A program made the translations under genes and the position numbers. Shown here piece after piece: positions 2,895 through 58,426 of a stretch of 64,000 nucleotides of DNA; the stretch's first letter is position 1; each line of letters begins with the position of its first letter. The notes beneath the pieces are model-generated. The model worked only from the letters and a program-made list of their open reading frames with translations, made no database searches and had not been told where the DNA came from. The DNA comes from Eukaryota sp. TZLM1-RC (Eukaryota; Protista; Metamonada: BaSk clade): NCBI GenBank assembly GCA_040285825.1, contig JAUPSS010000007.1:2206689-2270688 (forward strand), given 5' to 3'.

Positions 2895-3216
2895 CTTCAT
2901 CAATATTGCTAAAAGTAAACAACGCGAACTTGTTAAATGGAACGGTGATTAGAAGGAAAAACACTCAATATTTCCAACTTTTCAGCAATGTTTCAATTTT
3001 TGTGGCAGCTTTTCAGTTTAGTGGTAGCTGTTTAGCTTCAAACTCACAAGTGAAGGATCCGGAATTTCCTGCATAAAAAACATTTAAAAATCAACTGGAG
3101 GTAGGGATTTTGCAACTGAAATGCTTCTCATGTATCCTAATTGTGAAGGTTCCTGACGCCCATCAGCTCTAAAAATGAAAGCAAAACCTGTGACTTATCA
3201 ATTGATTCAACACACG

Positions 3217-13202: not shown

Positions 13203-16200
13203 TTTATTGATAGACAAAAGAAATGGTGTGTTGTCCCCTCATAAAGAGAAAACACAATTCTATTTTGTCAAAACAAACTGTTGAAATTTCTGTTAGTTCT
13301 TCTCCTTACAATCATTTCAAAATCTGCCAAAAATCGTATAGCCGTTGGAGCAAGTGAATTCAATAGAGAATGCTGTTGGGTGGACAATTTGGCCAAAGGT
13401 TCATTGTATTTTTTGATTTTGAATTTTTCTGCATTTGAAAGGGGATTATGAATTTCAGAATTAGCAAGCCTTTCTTTTGAGACATTACAAGGATCAACAG
13501 ACATTACATCCACTAAAATGAAGTTTCCATCTAAACCATGTAATATGACATCACCTCTCGTATTCTTATGAAAATCATTTTCAGCATCAAAAACGTTTGA
13601 CAACAGAGGATCCAAAAAAGATTCAATTCTATGAGACTTGCACATACAACATATTGATCTCTTACAGTATCATTACCCTTGCTTCTAAAAGTGATAAAAG
13701 GTTTACAATTTAACAAATGAGTAATTGTAATTTTTCGAGAACATTTACAAATTGTATTATGAGGTAAATTATCAGGTCGGATAGAGAAACGAAATCTCAT
13801 ATTCAAAGTCCAAGCAGAATCAGTTAAGAGAGTACCATAAACTTGAGGAATTGTTGTGTCATAAAGAAAGAGTCTTTCCTGATAGGTGGTTTCGGTGAAC
13901 CACCAGCCTGTCCTATGATCCCTATCAATTAAAATGTCTAAGGAGGCATTGTACCCAGGGCTGAACCTAGGGTAAGGGCAAGGATTTGCTTCGTTAATGA
14001 AGAGATTGTCTTCATCTCCAGCGAAACGTCTGAAAACACCCTCTCTAGTTGTCCTCATGTACCTGACACCGGGTCTAGGTTCAAAGGATGGTTTGGGATC
14101 AACTCTAGCGTTCTCGGGTTCAATCCTTTCGAAAGCAAGATAAGGGCCGATCCTAGGAGTGACACGAATTCCTAGTTCGTTTTCAAAACTAGGCTCAAGG
14201 AATGGGGGGTGTCCTTTGCTCATTTCCGTAGGAGGAATGGCCTCAGGGTCGTTAGGGTTAACTCTGGAATCCCTTAGGTCTGACGTTAGACGTTGGGTCT
14301 GTGCTGGTGGGAAGCACTGTTTTCGCGAACACTATTACTAGCATAGGAGCCAGAATAGAGGGGTACAGTCACTGAATGAAGTGGTTGATGATGGGCAGGT
14401 GTAGAGGATGTTCCTCTTCTGGCCTGTAACTCTCTATCCAGTCTGTTCTTGAGTTTCCAGATTCGTTCTTCTTGGAAGTAACGTTCTAAATATTTTTTAG
14501 AAACCTCACCAGTTTCTCTATCAATTTCAGGTACAGGTTCCATGGAAGGAGCTGGAGGTTGAGCCATGTGAGAGAATTCCCTGGGAGGTTTTTCATAGTC
14601 AACCAGATCCGAAAATAATAGTTCATACCTCTTCCTTTGCTCTTCGGAAAGATGCGAAGGAAAGTTTGGTGTGTTAGGAGTTGAATCTCTAGCCTGGGGA
14701 GGGGAAACAGACAGATTGTTAACTCCACTTACTGTTGATGAAGTCAGAGGAGATCCTGAAGTTGGGACAGCAGGATTTTGGATAGTTCTCCTAACAGTTG
14801 GAACTGGCGGGAGAAGCTGTTGAGAGTGAGAGGGTGGAACCTCAGAACTGGATGAAAGGGATGAAGATGGTACTTCAATGGCCTTTGTAGGGGAGGCAGA
14901 GGGTTGATCTTCCAATCCTTCCTTTGTTGCGAGAGAAGGTTGAACAGTTTCTCTGTTCTGAGTAGAAGGTGAAGGTGGTACTTAAGAACTTCTTTCAGGG
15001 AGGGGAGAAGGTGGAACTTCAGATGCCCTCAAATGTGAAGGAGGGAGAGGAGCAACGGAATCCTCAACATCTTCATCGTCGTAGGAGACCAATGAAGGGC
15101 TTCTTCCTTCCGAAGGAATAGAATCCTTAGGAGGGTTGTCTCCTTCCACAGGAACGGAATCTCGAGGAGGGGAGCTTCCTTCCATTGGAACGGAATCCTC
15201 AGGAAGGGAACTGTCTTCCTTTGGGATGGAACCCTCAGGGAGAGTTGCTTCAGGAAGCGCAGAAGCTTCAACCGAAGAAGGGAGCATGGAAGCAGGGTCT
15301 GTGGTTAGTGGTGAGGAAGAGGGACCAGTCTCTTCCTCAAGGATCCTACGTTGAGCCGGGGACGACCCAATACGTATTGATGGTCTTGGCTGTTGTGAGT
15401 TAGAATTCATACAATGTAGTGTAACAGAAGTGTTATTTATTACGAAGAGGAATTGTATTCTCTCTTCTTAAGCTAATAGGCGGAAATACTAATAAACTAA
15501 ACTATTAACTATAAATACTATTCAAGACTAACAGAGGAATTGTAGTAATTAAGGCAGAACAGAGATCGGTTTGCAATTTCTTGAATTGATTGGGGAAAAC
15601 ATTTGGTCTAGATTTGTGGTGACAATCTATCACGTTCACAAGCCAGCTCATTCAAATATAAACTGCTTTTGGGAACTAACTGATGAGAATCTTCAGCAAA
15701 TCTACAAGAAAATTCATCAATACAATTCTTGGATCCACCCCAAAAATACTGATTGACACAAAATAGAAGATTTATTAAATCCAATACCGCCCAAATTTGC
15801 TGCCGAAAATAAGTGACTTTTCAACATTCCTGGTTCCACATCCAATCAATCAGCAAAAATTCTGCTCTCAATGAATTAAAGGAACGACAAAAATATAATG
15901 CTATGGAAGGTGCACAAGATCTCAAAATGCGGGTTATTCTCCCAGTGTAGCAAATTTTGAGCATGACAAATTTAATATGTTTTTCTAGATCTAAAGAAGA
16001 AATTGAATCATGTTCAATTTTACTTTTTTCCAAAACAACTTGTAATTCAATTCTGAATTTGAGGCACATTTCCTAACCAACAATCAAGGAACTTAAAACC
16101 ATCACTACTATAATTAGTAAAAGGGACAACAGAATCTTTTATCACAAGATCCTGAGCACAGAAGCCAATAAGAAGGCATTTGCTTGCATTAAGATGAAGC

Positions 16201-16422: not shown

Positions 16423-19400
16423 TTGTTTTCCTCTTTTCTGGCTGATGCAAATTTTGAAATTCTTGAAAAACTTCAAAAGTTGCATCCTCAGGAAAATTCA
16501 AGTGTAGCAAGCCTGATGTTTGTCCTTTTTGGATTGAAAATCCAATTTCTGCAATTGAAATTTTCAAAGCTATTCAAAAACTACCAAAAGATAAAGCTAC
16601 AGGTCCATCTGAAATTTCTTTTGATCTGTTAAAAATAGCGTGCTCCAGTGCTCCCGAAATTGCTGAAGAACTTGCCCATTATTTTCATAATAATTAATTC
16701 TCCTTTTGAATAATAGGTTGCACGTTTGATTGCGTTAGTAAAGCCAGGTAATGGAATTAAACCTGATGGCCGTTGGTGAATCTTTATCTCGTTTGTTATC
16801 ATCGATTGTCTTCGATCGTGTCACAGACAAAGCTTCTAAATATTTGAGTCCTCATCAATTTGTAATAAAAATGAGTGATGGTGCTTCTGTTGCTGCTCTT
16901 GTTTCTGATACTTTTTTTAATGCAGAGGAAAATAACTTTATTTTAATCTTGATTTTAAAAATGCTTTTAATTCTGTAAAGCGAGAAGCAATTTTTGAAGT
17001 AATTGAATCTGATTTTTTTGAGCTATCACGTTTTTTCTACCAATTTTATGGTAAAGAATCGGATTTAATATTTAATTCATTTGGTTTAAAATCATCTTCT
17101 CGTGTGAAGCAAGGTGATCCTTTAGGCCCATTATTTTTTTGTTTTGCTACTCACAAAATTTTAGATATCATTAAGCAAAAATACCCTTCTATAAAAATGG
17201 TTGCTTATATGGATGATATATCTTTGACTGGTTCATTTGATTTACTACAACTGGTTGCTCAAACAATTGCCGAATCATATGAAAATATTGGGCTTCATCT
17301 TAATGCAAGCAAATGCCTTCTTATTGGCTTTTGTGCTCAGGATCTTGTGATAAAAGATTCTGTTGTCCCTTTTACTAATTATAGTAGTGATGGTTTTAAG
17401 TTCCTTGATTGTTGGTTAGGAAATGTGCCTCAAATTCAGAATTGAATTACAAGTTGTTTTGGAAAAAAGTAAAATTGAACATGATTCAATTTCTTCTTTA
17501 GATCTAGAAAAACATATTAAATTTGTCATGCTCAAAATTTGCTACACTGGGAGAATAACCCGCATTTTGAGATCTTGTGCACCTTCCATAGCATTATATT
17601 TTTGTCGTTCCTTTAATTCATTGAGAGCAGAATTTTTTGCTGATTGATTGGATGTGGAACCAGGAATGTTGAAAAGTCACTTATTTTCGGCAGCAAATTT
17701 GGGCGGTATTGGATTTAATAAATCTTCTATTTTGTGTCAATCAGTACTTTTGGGGTGGATCCAAGAATTGTATTGATGAATTTTCTTGTAGATTTGCTGA
17801 AGATTCTCATCAGTTAGTTCCCAAAAGCAGTTTATATTTGAATGAGCTGGCTTGTGAACGTGATAGATTGTCACCACAAATCTAGACCAAATGTTTTCCC
17901 CAATCAATTCAAGAAATTGCAAACCGATCTCTGTTCTGCCTTAATTACTACAATTCCTCTGTTAGTCTTGAATAGTATTTATAGTTAATAGTTTAGTTTA
18001 TTAGTATTTCCGCCTATTAGCTTAAGAAGAGAGAATACAATTCCTCTTCGTAATAAATAACACTTCTGTTACACTACATTGTATGAATTCTAACTCACAA
18101 CAGCCAAGACCATCAATACGTATTGGGTCGTCCCCGGCTCAACGTAGGATCCTTGAGGAAGAGACTGGTCCCTCTTCCTCACCACTAACCACAGACCCTG
18201 CTTCCATGCTCCCTTCTTCGGTTGAAGCTTCTGCGCTTCCTGAAGCAACTCTCCCTGAGGGTTCCATCCCAAAGGAAGACAATTCCCTTCCAGAGGATTC
18301 CGTTCCAATGGAAGGAAGCTCCCCTCCTCGAGATTCCGTTCCTGTGGAAGGAGACAACCCTCCTAAGGATTCTATTCCTTCGGAAGGAAGAAGCTCTTCA
18401 TTGGTCTCCTACGACGATGAAGATGTTGAGGATTCCGTTGCTCCTCTCCCTCCTTCACATTTGAGGGCATCTGAAGTTCCACCTTCTCCCCTCCCTGAAA
18501 GAAGTTCTTAAGTACCACCTTCACCTTCTACTCAGAACAGAGAAACTGTTCAACCTTCTCTCGCAACAAAGGAAGGATTGGAAGATCAACCCTCTGCCTC
18601 CCCTACAAAGGCCATTGAAGTACCATCTTCATCCCTTTCATCCAGTTCTGAGGTTCCACCCTCTCACTCTCAACAGCTTCTCCCGCCAGTTCCAACTGTT
18701 AGGAGAACTATCCAAAATCCTGCTGTCCCAACTTCAGGATCTCCTCTTACTTCATCAACAGTAAGTGGAGTTAACAATCTGTCTGTTTCCCCTCCCCAGG
18801 CTAGAGATTCAACTCCTAGTATACCAAACTTTCCTTCGCATCTTTCCGAAGAGCAAAGGAAGAGGTATGAACTATTATTTTCGGATCTGGTTGACTATGA
18901 GGAACCTCCCAGGGAATTCTCTCACATGGCTCAACCTCCAGCTCCTTCCATGGAACCTGTACCTGAAATTGATAGAGAAACTGGTGAGGTTTCTAAAAAA
19001 TATTTAGAACGTTACTTCCAAGAAGAACGAATCTGGAAACTCAAGAACAGACTGGATAGAGAGTTACAGGCCAGAAGAGGAACATCCTCTACACCTGCCC
19101 ATCATCAGCCACTTCATTCAGTGACTGTACCCCTCTATTCTGGCTCCTATGCTAGTAATAGTGTTCGCGAAAACAGTGCTTCCCACCAGCACAGACCCAA
19201 CGTCTAACGTCAGACCTAAGGGATTCCAGAGTTAACCCTAACGACCCTGAGGCCATTCCTCCTACGGAAATGAGCAAAGGACACCCCCCATTCCTTGAGC
19301 CTAGTTTTGAAAACGAACTAGGAATTCGTGTCACTCCTAGGATCGGCCCTTATCTTGCTTTCGAAAGGATTGAACCCGAGAACGCTAGAGTTGATCCCAA

Positions 19401-20290
19401 ACCATCCTTTGAACCTAGACCCGGTGTCAGGTACATGAGGACAACTAGAGAGGGTGTTTTCAGACGTTTCGCTGGAGATGAAGACAATCTCTTCATTAAC
19501 GAAGCAAATCCTTGCCCTTACCCTAGGTTCAGCCCTGGGTACAATGCCTCCTTAGACATTTTAATTGATAGGGATCATAGGACAGGCTGGTGGTTCACCG
19601 AAACCACCTATCAGGAAAGACTCTTTCTTTATGACACAACAATTCCTCAAGTTTATGGTACTCTCTTAACTGATTCTGCTTGGACTTTGAATATGAGATT
19701 TCGTTTCTCTATCCGACCTGATAATTTACCTCATAATACAATTTGTAAATGTTCTCGAAAAATTACAATTACTCATTTGTTAAATTGTAAACCTTTTATC
19801 ACTTTTAGAAGCAAGGGTAATGATACTGTAAGAGATCAATATGTTGTATGTGCAAGTCTCATAGAATTGAATCTTTTTTGGATCCTCTGTTGTCAAACGT
19901 GTTTGATGCTGAAAATGATTTTCATAAGAATACGAGAGGTGATGTCATATTACAGGGTTTAGATGGAAACTTCATTTTAGTGGATGTAATGTCTGTTGAT
20001 CCTTGTAATGTCTCAAATGAAAGGCTTGCTAATTCTGAAATTCATAACCCCCTTTCAAATGCTGAAAAATTCAAAATCAAAAAATACAATGAACCTTTGT
20101 CCAAATTGTCCACCCAACAGCATTCTCTATTGAATTCACTTGCTCCAACGGCTATACGATTTTTGGCAGATTTTGAAATGATTGTAAGGAGAAGAACTAA
20201 CAGAAATTTCAACAGTTTGTTTTGACAAAATAGAATTGTGTTTTCTCTTTATGAGGGGACAACACACCATTTCTTTTGTCTATCAATAAA
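16423..20290 (+). mobile_element. CRE-like non-LTR retrotransposon family B, degenerate, starting in the palindrome spacer
   Basis: Spacer has ARLIALVKP and AVGESLSRL (CRE-clade RT N-terminus) continuing into QGDPLGP/AYMDD; zinc knuckle and REL follow after the LTR insertion. Confidence 0.85.
17960..19638 (+). mobile_element. LTR retrotransposon family B fragment: 5' LTR (17960..18115) plus truncated ORF1
   Basis: TGTTAG...CCATCA 156-bp LTR, ATG at 18083 inside the LTR, ORF1 homologous to family C; flanked by a repeated ACAATTCCTC (17950..17959 and 19639..19648). Confidence 0.85.
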
Positions 20291-45632: not shown

Positions 45633-46119
45633 CTTTTTTGAACAAGACTAGTTTCATCACCATGCATTTCCATACTGGTAATTAAAAAGTGAATGAAAAT
45701 AATACATACATTGCTCAAAAGCATATCTGGGGACGATAGACATGATACTGCTTTAAAACAACATTATTGTATTGGGTTGTTATTAACACCATACCAAATG
45801 AAACAATCTACGAACAACTTCTGCAAACAATCCAATACAGTACATGGAGCTGATGAATAAAGTGTCTTTATAGTCAAAGACAGCAATGGTTTTGATAGAA
45901 GTTCTACCACAAATACAGTTCTTTCATAGTAATATTTGTGATAGACCTTGGACATAATTTAGACCTATTACTAAATGATTAGTGACTGTTTTTGTCAAAC
46001 TGTAGGGATTAATGATCAAAAATCATTTGGTTTCTGCTGCACGTTTTGGAATTGTTGTATTTACAAAAACCTCCATTTTGTGAAATTCAGCTTAAGTAGT
46101 GCAGTGGAGGCGAAAAATT

Positions 46120-47162: not shown

Positions 47163-47501
47163 AATGATAATTTATGTATACAAAATACCACTATCCTTTC
47201 TCCTTTTAGACGGCAAACAAACCCGTCAAAGGGTTTGTTGAAACAGTTGTTGAAATAAAATAAAAACAATGATTTGCGGAAAGACAGCAAAATACAGTTT
47301 TGAAAATTTGGGACAACAGGTTAAGAGTTGTAGATAAGATGAAGAAATAAAGAACTAACAATCAGAATTTGAAAAGAAAAAACAAGTTTATAGAATTTTA
47401 AAGTGCATGAAGGATAAGAAAGTCCACAAGTCTAAGTAGAACCTCTACTCTTAACAGTATGTAGGAGAAGTCAGTTACAGATGTAATTATGAGTGTATAA
47501 A

Positions 47502-48281
47502 TTACCAATTATGTCGGGAAGGAGACCTCGTCGTTGGAGACCGAGGCCATCCACCGTGTTCAGAACCTCCACCAATAGGGGCCGGGATATCACCTTCATC
47601 TTGTGGGTGTTGTGGGTGCATACCTTGTTGGTACATCATTTGTGTATAATGTTCCATCTGTTTGGGATCTGGAGCACCGCCCTGTGCCATGCTCATCATA
47701 TAAGGATTAAACATGGGCATCATGGGAGCAGAACCACGCTCTCTGTCGGGAGCAAATGATTGTGAAGGTGGCATGAATGGAGGATACATTGGAGGGAAAC
47801 TTGTCATTCCCATGAAAGGATAGGGAGGTCCATAATGGGAGGAACGCTTAGGGCTAGGAGAACGAGAGTCTCTGCTTTTATGACGATATCTATCACGGTC
47901 GTCTTCGTCAAAGGAGGACCTGCGGGGACGTGAGGAGCGAGAATAAGAAGACGAGCGGCGAGAGGAAGGATAATCACGCATCATTCGGGTGTCGCGTCGG
48001 CCTGTAGGGTGAGAAGCAGAATAAAAGAACATACGACGAGGACCACGAGCACGCTCAACAGTAATACGTTTGGAGTTGAACTCAGTGCCGTTGAGAGCTT
48101 CTACGGCTTTATCAACATCTTCATCATTTTCAAAGTCTACAAAAGCAAAACCACAAAGTCCAGTTTTGGTGGAGATAACATTGCCATGAGGGGAAAACAG
48201 TTCGCGTAGAGTAGCGTCATCAATGTCGTCGCTGACATTGCCTATATAGATTCTACCTTTGTGGTACTCAGAGGAAGACAT
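47502..48281 (-). CDS. SR-like RRM RNA-binding protein
   Basis: RNP2 IYIGNV, RNP1 GFAFVDF, RITVERARG, RS/RD-rich region and Pro/Met-rich tail. Confidence 0.85.
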   Translation of the reverse strand: MSSSEYHKGRIYIGNVSDDIDDATLRELFSPHGNVISTKTGLCGFAFVDFENDEDVDKAVEALNGTEFNSKRITVERARGPRRMFFYSASHPTGRRDTRMMRDYPSSRRSSSYSRSSRPRRSSFDEDDRDRYRHKSRDSRSPSPKRSSHYGPPYPFMGMTSFPPMYPPFMPPSQSFAPDRERGSAPMMPMFNPYMMSMAQGGAPDPKQMEHYTQMMYQQGMHPQHPQDEGDIPAPIGGGSEHGGWPRSPTTRSPSRHNW

Positions 48282-49449: not shown

Positions 49450-50868
49450 TCACCACTGCGCAAAAGCTTGATCTATGGGATCTGCCATCCTGTCAATTCT
49501 ACGTTGTTCTTCATCATACAACTCAGCCTGATGCGTTCCTTCATGTAGCAACTCTCCCTTCCTTCTATCCTTTTCTCTTGCCATATCCAAATCTGCATCC
49601 ACATCAGCAAAGTCCTCCTCGTCAAACACATCAGCAGGGACGTCTTGAAGTTGAACAGCTGGTGCTCCATCAAGCCCTCGAAGTTGTTCAAATATCAGTT
49701 GTCGTATTTTATTCAGATATTCAGGTGTGTTGTAATTTGTTTCAGATGTGGTGAAGATATGCAACTGTCGGTCCGGTTCATTGAAATACTCCATATAATC
49801 ATTGCAGGGAAGCTTGTTTTCCAAGCTCCTACCAAGCAAAACCCCAGTTTCATAAGCCCAACATCTTGCTACATTCCTTACAGTATATCCCCCACCACCA
49901 AGAACCACCATGGGAACACCAAAGGACTGCATAAAGCGAACACATTCACCATGTCCTTCTAGAGAGAGATTAAAGCAACCAAGACGATCTCCAGCAAGCG
50001 AGTCCGCCCCACATTGCAGGACCACAGCGCCAGGCCTATATCTTGCCATGACTTCATTCATCACATCCCTGAACAAAAGGAGATAGGATTCGTCATCTAT
50101 ACCATCCATTAAAGGAACATTGACAGAATATCCACGACCGGGGCCACTACCCACGTCAGCAATGTCACCAGTGCCGGGAAAGAATTCACCGTATTTGTGA
50201 AAGGAGACGGTCATGACTCTGTCGGTTGTGTAGAATGCTTCCTCAACACCATCACCGTGATGGATGTCAATGTCAACATAGAGGACACGAGCATGATACT
50301 TCAGGAGTTCAAGGATTCCAAGGACAATGTCATTCACATAGCAAAAACTGAAGTAAGGAAAAGATAAGATAAAACAAACCCAGATGCTTCAGACTTCTTT
50401 GCATGATGAAGACCTCCAGCCCAATTGATAGCGATATCACATTTTCCGTGGTTGATACGCTGGGCGGCAGCAATACTTCCTCCTGAACTTATTTGGCAAA
50501 GTTCATACATTCCATCAAAAATAGGACAGTCTTCACCAACGTTGAAGGCATTGAGCATTTGTTCAAATGAAGATGCATTGTCAACAGTGATTCGAGAGAG
50601 AAAGTTAATGTAGTCGTCTGAGTGAAACCGTGACAAATCCTTGGAAGAAGCGAGAGGTGGACGGTAGAGTGTCATGTCTTTGTACAATTCATAACCAAGT
50701 ATAAGAGAATGTGCCATTCGGATACGTATGGGTTTCATGGGATATAAGATTAATAAAAAAGAAGAAAACACATACGACTATGCGGTTAAAAGTAAAACAA
50801 AACAAACATACAGAACCAAAGTAGATTGAGCCAACATCATTATGATAGTAGTACACAATTCGACTCAT
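49450..50868 (-). CDS. HDAC1: Class I histone deacetylase (RPD3/HDAC1), 4 exons
   Basis: YYY..DVG..(H)[47 protein letters not shown]; introns 50780..50811, 50744..50775 and 50348..50379. Confidence 0.95.
50348..50379 (-). other. 32-nt canonical GT-AG intron (HDAC intron 3)
   Basis: GTTTGT...CTTAC-TTCAG; removal restores EASGFCYVND. Confidence 0.92.
50744..50811 (-). other. Two predicted 32-nt GT-AT introns around a 4-nt micro-exon (AGTC, 50776..50779)
   Basis: Removal restores FGS-SHPMKP; both start GTATGT and show the same branch-site spacing as the canonical introns. Confidence 0.7.
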
Positions 50869-57437: not shown

Positions 57438-58426
57438 GATGTGGGAATATGGGAAATTTAGAATTTGTGAAATCCTTTAAGCAGTTCAAATGGTTAGAGT
57501 ACATATCTACCAAGTCTTCCTACGAGAGTGTTCTTAAAGTGACGTACCTTGTCACATTCATGCTTCATTGCTTTACATGTCAACAAAATATATAAATCCC
57601 AGTTCACATGGTACATGTCAGTTCTTCTTCTGTAGTGCTCAAAACGTGTTGGTAACAAGATCCATTTAAACAAAGTAGCTAAACTACATAATGGCTCTTG
57701 CCTTTTTGCAACTATAAAACCATCCAATTTACCCACTACACTATCCCAATATCATTGAAGATATTACATGTATCTGTATTTTTAAGAATCAAGAATAAGC
57801 AGCCGGTGATGATCTCAATACTCGAACCTGGCCTCATTCATCATTGGGTGGTATCGTTTGCAGATTACTTTTGTTACACTTTATCCACAAATCAAGTCAT
57901 ATCTTCCTTGTTTGTTGGAAGACATGTAGTGCAGTCAAAGATTCGCTGAGGTTCTTTATCTTGTTAAACTCAGATGTCTTTTTTCTAGTTTGTGTTTTTT
58001 CATTGATGTTTGTTGGAATAAATTATCGACGTTTTTTTTCTAGTAAATTCTTTTTGACTCTGTTGGGATATGACAATTTAGAATTCTAAGTTTGTTAAAT
58101 AGTTTTTCATTTTGATAAACCAAATTTTGTGAAAAAAGAGGAAAATATTCCTTAAATTTCCTTAACAACTCCAATCATATCTGTTCTGAGTTCTTAACAC
58201 ATTGATATGAGTTAATGTTAATGGTGACTAAGGTATTGCAAAACACTTTTGTTTTGGGAGTGTTGTACTTGTTCACACTATATGAGAACTTAAAACTTGC
58301 AATGTCATTTCAAACAAAAAAATTTGAAAGATAGATGAAGGGAAACATAAGGAATGCTTCCCAGAGCAATCAGAATTCAGAAATTCTTGGAGGTAATAGA
58401 AAGACATCTCGTGAACAGATTGTACT

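Follow-up and report, generated by a model that had tools for sequence, protein, structure and literature searches.

The HDAC locus of Skoliomonas litria

The window analysed here, a 64-kb stretch of DNA, comes from TZLM1-RC, the type isolate of Skoliomonas litria. The species is an anaerobic, free-living metamonad of soda lakes; skoliomonads are relatives of Fornicata, and within the genus RCL forms the deepest branch while TZLM1-RC and GEM-RC are sisters (PMC11603281). On the minus strand of the window, we found a gene for a class I histone deacetylase (HDAC; Rpd3/HDAC1 type) with about 1.3 kb of coding sequence. Its last exon (49450-50347) carries the catalytic motifs and closes with a TGA stop at 49450-49452; a Hist_deacetyl domain is present together with the catalytic His-His, Asp-His-Asp, and Tyr motifs, and GGGGY is readable. 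In protein searches, this exon (49453-50346, minus strand) was 100% identical to the NCBI protein P9112_011383 ("Eukaryota sp. TZLM1-RC"), 77% identical to a protein of GEM-RC1, and 72% identical to a protein of TZLM3-RCL, and the Pfam domain PF00850 was assigned to all three skoliomonad matches.

The 5' part of the gene is broken up in an unusual manner. Exon 1 (50812-50868, minus strand) starts with an ATG at 50868 and corresponds to the N-terminus of the orthologs in GEM-RC1 and RCL. It is followed by a 32-nt block (50780-50811, block 1), a proposed first intron of the form GTATGT...TTTTAACCGCAT that ends in AT (CGCAT) and has a branch-like A at position 26. The next four bases, AGTC (50776-50779), are the proposed micro-exon, comprising a Ser codon (AGT) and the first base of a His codon (CAT), and a second block of 32 nt (50744-50775, block 2), a proposed intron GTATGT...ATTAATCTTAT, likewise ends in AT (CTTAT). 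Exon 3 (50380-50743) opens with the AT that completes the His codon, continues with CCC ATG AAA CCC, and ends with EASG, after which a 32-nt GT-AG intron (intron 3, 50348-50379) interrupts the gene at EASG|F, the same position as in all three Skoliomonas genomes. The 5' sites of the two blocks read GTATGTTT and GTATGTGT, and their branch-like motifs, TTTTAAC and ATTAAT, both lie 6 nt from the end. A single AG occurs between the first base of block 1 and a point 132 nt farther downstream; it directly follows block 1 at intron positions 33-34, and block 2 is thus devoid of AG. The AG of the micro-exon is consequently the only canonical 3' splice site on offer, and its use would define an alternative intron of 34 nt. 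An earlier sequence-only reading had described two 32-nt blocks around AGTC, followed by AT CCC ATG AAA CCC, with no AG in the second block, and every base that it stated is found at the locus.

Conserved protein sequence and enumeration of splice models

Removal of both blocks (TCT + AGTC + AT CCC) gives YFGSSHPMKP, which has the same length as the corresponding segment of the GEM-RC1 ortholog. Among 223 class I HDACs that we fetched, 161 retained this region; the His before PMKP is present in all of them, and exactly three residues lead from Gly to PMKP in 160 of the 161. Between exon 1 and the corresponding sequences of GEM-RC1 and RCL, most differences are synonymous, which argues that the exon is read in the HDAC frame and has to be joined in frame to HPMKP. 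In S. litria, the N-terminal GxxHPMKP is present only when both AT-ending blocks are taken out. The sequence-only reading had predicted F-G-S-S-H-P-M-K-P for this joining, and the prediction agrees with the pattern of the GEM-RC1 ortholog and with the His that is invariant among homologs.

Splice models with one or two introns were enumerated, and the joined translations were used to read the frames. If all 3' ends are required to be AG, none of the one- or two-intron models restores the motif. Recovery of the His always places the end of the last intron at 50744 (...CTTAT|AT CCC), and the sole model that combines GT at both starts with GxxHPMKP is the arrangement of 32 nt, AGTC, and 32 nt, which yields GSSHPMKP. 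The only fully canonical model removes the 34-nt GT-AG intron (50811-50778, junction TCT|TCGTATGTG) and keeps block 2 as coding sequence. It is in frame and free of stops, and its distance of 8 nt from the branch-like A to the AG equals the spacing of a GT-AG intron in an RRM gene of the window. However, it exchanges Ser-His for a hydrophobic insert of 12 residues, so that the His kept in 161 of 161 homologs is lost and an insert that occurs in none of them is gained, and it treats as coding a block that shows every hallmark of an intron. The loss of the His through the AG located 2 nt after block 1, and the 12 inserted residues when block 2 is kept, had both been foreseen in the earlier reading and were recovered when we re-derived the translation. 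Splicing at canonical sites only is unlikely in our estimation.

A single longer intron with an AT end would also keep the frame. Two such GT-AT models, of 64 nt (50807-50744, GTTTGT...TTAT) and 70 nt (50811-50742), lead to GSVYPMKP and GSPMKP, respectively, and the deposited gene model, too, has one intron of about 69 nt at this place. Nevertheless, both forfeit the invariant His, both ignore the second perfect GTATGT site, and their lengths are twice that of any other intron that we read in the three genomes (28-35 nt), so we hold one long AT-ended intron to be quite improbable. Two GT-AT introns around a 4-nt exon are the best-supported reading of the S. litria HDAC and, judged from the sequence, the likely one; the extreme shortness of the exon is a point against it.

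Orthologs in the sister species

Neither of the two S. litria blocks occurs in the orthologs of GEM-RC1 and RCL, and neither ortholog carries an insert at the block position, which speaks against block 2 as coding sequence. The GEM-RC1 ortholog is intronless there and reads contiguously YYGASHPMKP. In the TZLM3-RCL ortholog (sequence L002), we found a separate 32-nt intron of the form GTATGT...CTCAT (2971-3002), which lies within a Met codon and whose position differs from those of both S. litria introns; this GT-AT intron is new in the present analysis. Reading through it leads to a stop, and no AG occurs within 72 nt of its start, while splicing it out restores the HDAC frame with the predicted junction CATCCTAT-GAAACCAATT. 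It counts as an independent case because it occupies a different position in the assembly of a different species, and it lacks the canonical rescue, so that canonical splicing alone would not account for this ortholog. Provided that exon 1 is expressed, the RCL case makes it close to certain that this gene family uses an AT 3' end in at least one intron.

The intron common to the three species (EASG|F) is GT-AG in each, with lengths of 32, 31, and 32 nt. In this gene, therefore, all three lineage-specific introns are of the GT-AT form, while the old shared intron is GT-AG in three of three species. Comparison of the orthologs suggests that the two S. litria introns were probably gained after the split from GEM-RC(1). 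Protein searches for a Barthelona ortholog, with which the RCL intron could be polarised, returned none; the skoliomonad matches were deposited genome models only, and no transcript-derived protein with a spliced N-terminus was among them.

The same comparison bears on the possibility that the gene is a recent pseudogene, or that translation starts from the Met of HPMKP and exon 1 is not used. The automated RCL model does begin at this Met. On the other hand, the three species share exon 1 with changes that are mostly synonymous, and it encodes the first core beta-strand of class I HDACs; the open reading frame beyond the blocks is intact with all catalytic motifs, and random decay that struck only two terminal intron bases is very unlikely. 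A pseudogene or an unused exon 1 is accordingly a highly improbable explanation.

An error of assembly or polishing, with both introns truly ending in AG, has in its favour that the assembly is Nanopore-based. Against it, the Nanopore assembly (41x) was polished with 206x Illumina data and has a Merqury completeness of 98.7% (PMC11316075). It would take two identical G-to-T errors at the last bases of introns in S. litria and a third in the assembly of another species, and a block 1 ending in ...GCAG would still leave the following AG in place. The earlier reading had called two independent G-to-T errors unlikely; this judgement is strengthened, since the same error is needed at three intron ends in two assemblies, and we give such an artefact almost no credence.

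Deposited gene models

The S. litria gene set was predicted with GeneMark-ET, AUGUSTUS, and PASA and was manually curated (PMC11316075). The deposited model P9112_011383 starts at an ATG at 50840 (window positions 50742-50840, minus strand) and reads exon 1 out of frame; as a result, the initial 10 residues of the model are erroneous, and it lacks about 24 residues of the true N-terminus. It spans 1391 nt for 429 amino acids, which corresponds to a 69-nt intron that covers both blocks and has non-consensus ends, and to a further intron of 32 nt. The HDAC model of TZLM3-RCL, RCL1_003959, starts at the Met of HPMKP and misses the first 24 residues, leaving out the conserved upstream exon (L002, ATG at 2900) together with the 32-nt GT...AT intron (2971-3002).

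The simple 34-nt GT-AG model was open to the depositors, yet it was not used, a further point against canonical splicing. Considering that the predictors work with consensus sites only and that the 34-nt model was passed over, we infer that the curation followed a gap in RNA-seq coverage over both blocks; the deposited 69-nt intron is thus a hint of such a gap. An exon of 4 nt is too short for an aligner to place.

Intron geometry

We compared the three AT-ending introns with nine GT-AG introns from the three genomes, namely three of a lysozyme-like gene, one of the RRM gene, one of the 5' region of a PI4K gene, HDAC intron 3 in three species, and one of two GEM-RC1 catalase introns. The nine GT-AG introns are 28-35 nt long and contain 57-78% pyrimidine, and in 7 of them a YTNAY motif is followed by exactly six bases after its A (7 and 8 nt in the other two). 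The two blocks and the RCL intron all start with GTATGT, measure 32 nt, and have the A at position 26, so that only the last base sets them apart. They have the 5' site (GTATGT/GTTTGT), the length, and the branch spacing of the local mini-introns; only the terminal AG is missing from the three.

The two exceptions in spacing are informative. In the RRM-gene intron, an AG located 8 nt after the branch-like A is used and an AC at +6 is skipped, the latter not being usable because the frame would break; the PI4K 5' intron has a spacing of +7. The data fit a short reach from branch to end at which either A-G or A-T is accepted; they do not fit a strict ruler. The AG located 2 nt beyond block 1 has the geometry of the RRM intron and is therefore a credible competing site, the use of which may give rise to some unproductive mRNA. 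The earlier proposal that the blocks share the length, 5' hexamer, and branch spacing of canonical introns holds, in that they are like 7 of the 9 GT-AG introns. It had further proposed a spliceosome that picks 3' sites by distance and accepts AT: the acceptance of AT gains an independent case in RCL, whereas selection by distance alone is only partly supported, given the spacings of +8 and +7.

Some of these introns have features of their own. The intron of the RRM-domain gene (48002-48034, minus strand) is a 33-nt GT-AG intron whose retention would keep the frame, because its length is a multiple of three and it is stop-free. At 45675-45760 (minus strand), ahead of the start that is annotated for the PI3/PI4-kinase gene, lie a possible unannotated first exon, whose ATG is at about 45743, and a GT-AG intron of 35 nt. 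In the catalase of GEM-RC1 (L001, 1100-1290, minus strand), the first two introns are 28 and 30 nt long, are GT-AG, and have a branch-like A 6 nt from the end.

Occurrence by chance and other candidate origins

GTATGT occurs 26 times in the window when both strands are counted, and only 3 of these sites also have YTNAY at positions 23-27 and A at 31, which completes the geometry: block 1, block 2, and a GT-AG intron in the lysozyme-like gene. In shuffled sequence, 0.35 such sites are expected per window. The two HDAC blocks lie 36 nt apart and exactly at the break of a conserved reading frame; the two-block pattern is far beyond chance.

Several other origins of the blocks were considered and rejected. 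The blocks are identical at 21 of 32 positions, no higher than for unrelated introns (block 2 and intron 3 share 20 of 32), which gives no sign of a tandem duplication, and neither has a second copy within the window, as a repeat family would. A structured, self-splicing, or bulge-helix-bulge intron is not indicated by the folding energy (MFE -9.7 kcal/mol, z = -0.87 against shuffles). Minor (U12-type) introns do not fit either: the 5' sites are not RTATCCTT, TCCTTRAY is absent 10-15 nt from the end, and the branch-like motif lies at 6 nt.

Pattern-plus-geometry scans of the window gave no further convincing GT-AT intron, and only these scans were informative, a window-wide census by joining of open reading frames being too noisy for a GT-AT frequency. 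A GT-AT candidate at 47359 falls in an intergenic stretch. An AT-AG candidate of 32 nt (57475-57506, minus strand, ATATGT...TTAAAG) has a C instead of a branch-like A at position 26 and agrees with the local intron geometry more poorly than the two blocks of the HDAC gene do. When metagenome contigs were scanned with an exact pattern for the junction of blocks 1 and 2, in which the critical base was left as N, no match was returned.

Proposed splicing of the HDAC pre-mRNA

In the explanation that we propose, the pre-mRNA of this class I HDAC, which looks single-copy, would contain two adjacent spliceosomal mini-introns. Both would be of the local type, which is about 32 nt long, starts with GTATGT, is rich in pyrimidines, and has its YTNAY branch motif six bases before the end, and both would have T in place of G as the last base. 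Their branch points are assigned from motifs. The introns would probably be removed one after the other, and with such successive removal the 4-nt exon would never have to be recognised alone. Joining of TCT, AGTC, and AT CCC would then give G-S-S-H-P-M-K-P, and the predicted mRNA reads GGTTCT-AGTC-ATCCCATG, containing GGTTCTAGTCATCCCATG. Exon ligation would take place at A-T when this dinucleotide lies at the usual short spacing from the branch. Whether the skoliomonad spliceosome accepts A-T in addition to A-G for ligation, provided that it lies within a short, fixed reach of the branch point, with new introns preferentially born AT-ended, is in our view an evenly balanced question.

The Ser codon of the micro-exon is AGT, while both orthologs have TCA. 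On this account, the AG may be the former 3' site of block 1, which would once have been an intron of 34 nt. A shift to the AT two bases upstream may, as a matter of speculation, have compensated a 2-nt change that arrived with the second intron.

Comparison with known introns

Giardia, Trichomonas, and Spironucleus have uniform short introns in which the branch point is fused to the 3' splice site (PMC6679479, PMC2483917), and in Trichomonas a displaced branch motif abolishes splicing (PMC6679479). The skoliomonad introns resemble these metamonad mini-introns in the extended GTATGT-type 5' site, the short uniform length (about 30-45 nt in the former), and the fixed distance from branch to end. 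In contrast, the introns of Giardia, Trichomonas, and Spironucleus end in AG (...ACACRCAG, ...AARHTAG) at 7-8 or more nt after the branch A, whereas those of skoliomonads mostly end 6 nt after it, and three in the HDAC gene family are AT-ended. A closer parallel is a 30-nt GT-AT "type A" intron in the DinF gene of Giardia, which was seen in RNA-seq and is spliced at 1.3% (PMC10711314). It shares its size class and its GT-AT ends with the HDAC introns, and its host is likewise a metamonad; however, its splicing is rare and its context non-essential, while the AT ends in the HDAC would need to be used efficiently in an essential gene. Introns ending in AT were not reported for skoliomonads or barthelonids in any publication that our literature search returned, and the two papers on these organisms (PMC11316075, PMC11603281) are silent on spliceosomal intron ends.

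In mammals, GT-AT introns form a rare, conserved, and splicing-competent class of the U12 and U2 types (DEADC1, SLC24A6, DGCR2), and U12-type splicing tolerates varied last bases (PMC1557818). The HDAC introns differ from the U12-type GT-AT introns of animals in having GTATGT and not RTATCCTT as the 5' site, as well as 6 nt from branch to end. The frequency is also different: animals have a handful of GT-AT introns per genome, while here 2 of about nine introns in one 64-kb window would be of this form.

Two further systems are related in part. In the appendicularian tunicates Fritillaria and Oikopleura, a spliceosome of the major type processes many non-GT-AG introns in conserved genes; they differ from the skoliomonads in lineage and in the terminal dinucleotides, and the tunicate introns are supported by RNA, while the skoliomonad ones are read from DNA. 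Micro-exons of 1-5 nt between two introns occur in plants and animals, where they are missed by aligners and gene predictors. Unlike in these cases, both introns that would flank the S. litria micro-exon are only 32 nt long and have non-AG ends.

The terminal G of introns is among the most conserved signals of eukaryotic gene expression, and in solved spliceosome structures the last G of the intron pairs with its first G during exon ligation. If the proposed splicing is true, skoliomonads would offer a natural system in which a near-universal 3' G is dispensable, and routine A-T ligation by a free-living protist, on both sides of a 4-base exon in an essential chromatin enzyme, would amount to a natural experiment on the recognition and proofreading of 3' splice sites, with a bearing on how new introns are gained. 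Since standard predictors mis-model such genes, the skoliomonad proteomes, on which inferences about mitochondrial reduction draw, would also hold systematic errors, both N-terminal and internal.

Other features of the window

Elsewhere in the window, two sets of open reading frames at 13268-15410 (minus strand) and 18083-20225 (plus strand) have identical lengths (125, 230, 209, and 142 amino acids) in mirror order. They look like a large inverted duplication and probably represent a repeated mobile element.
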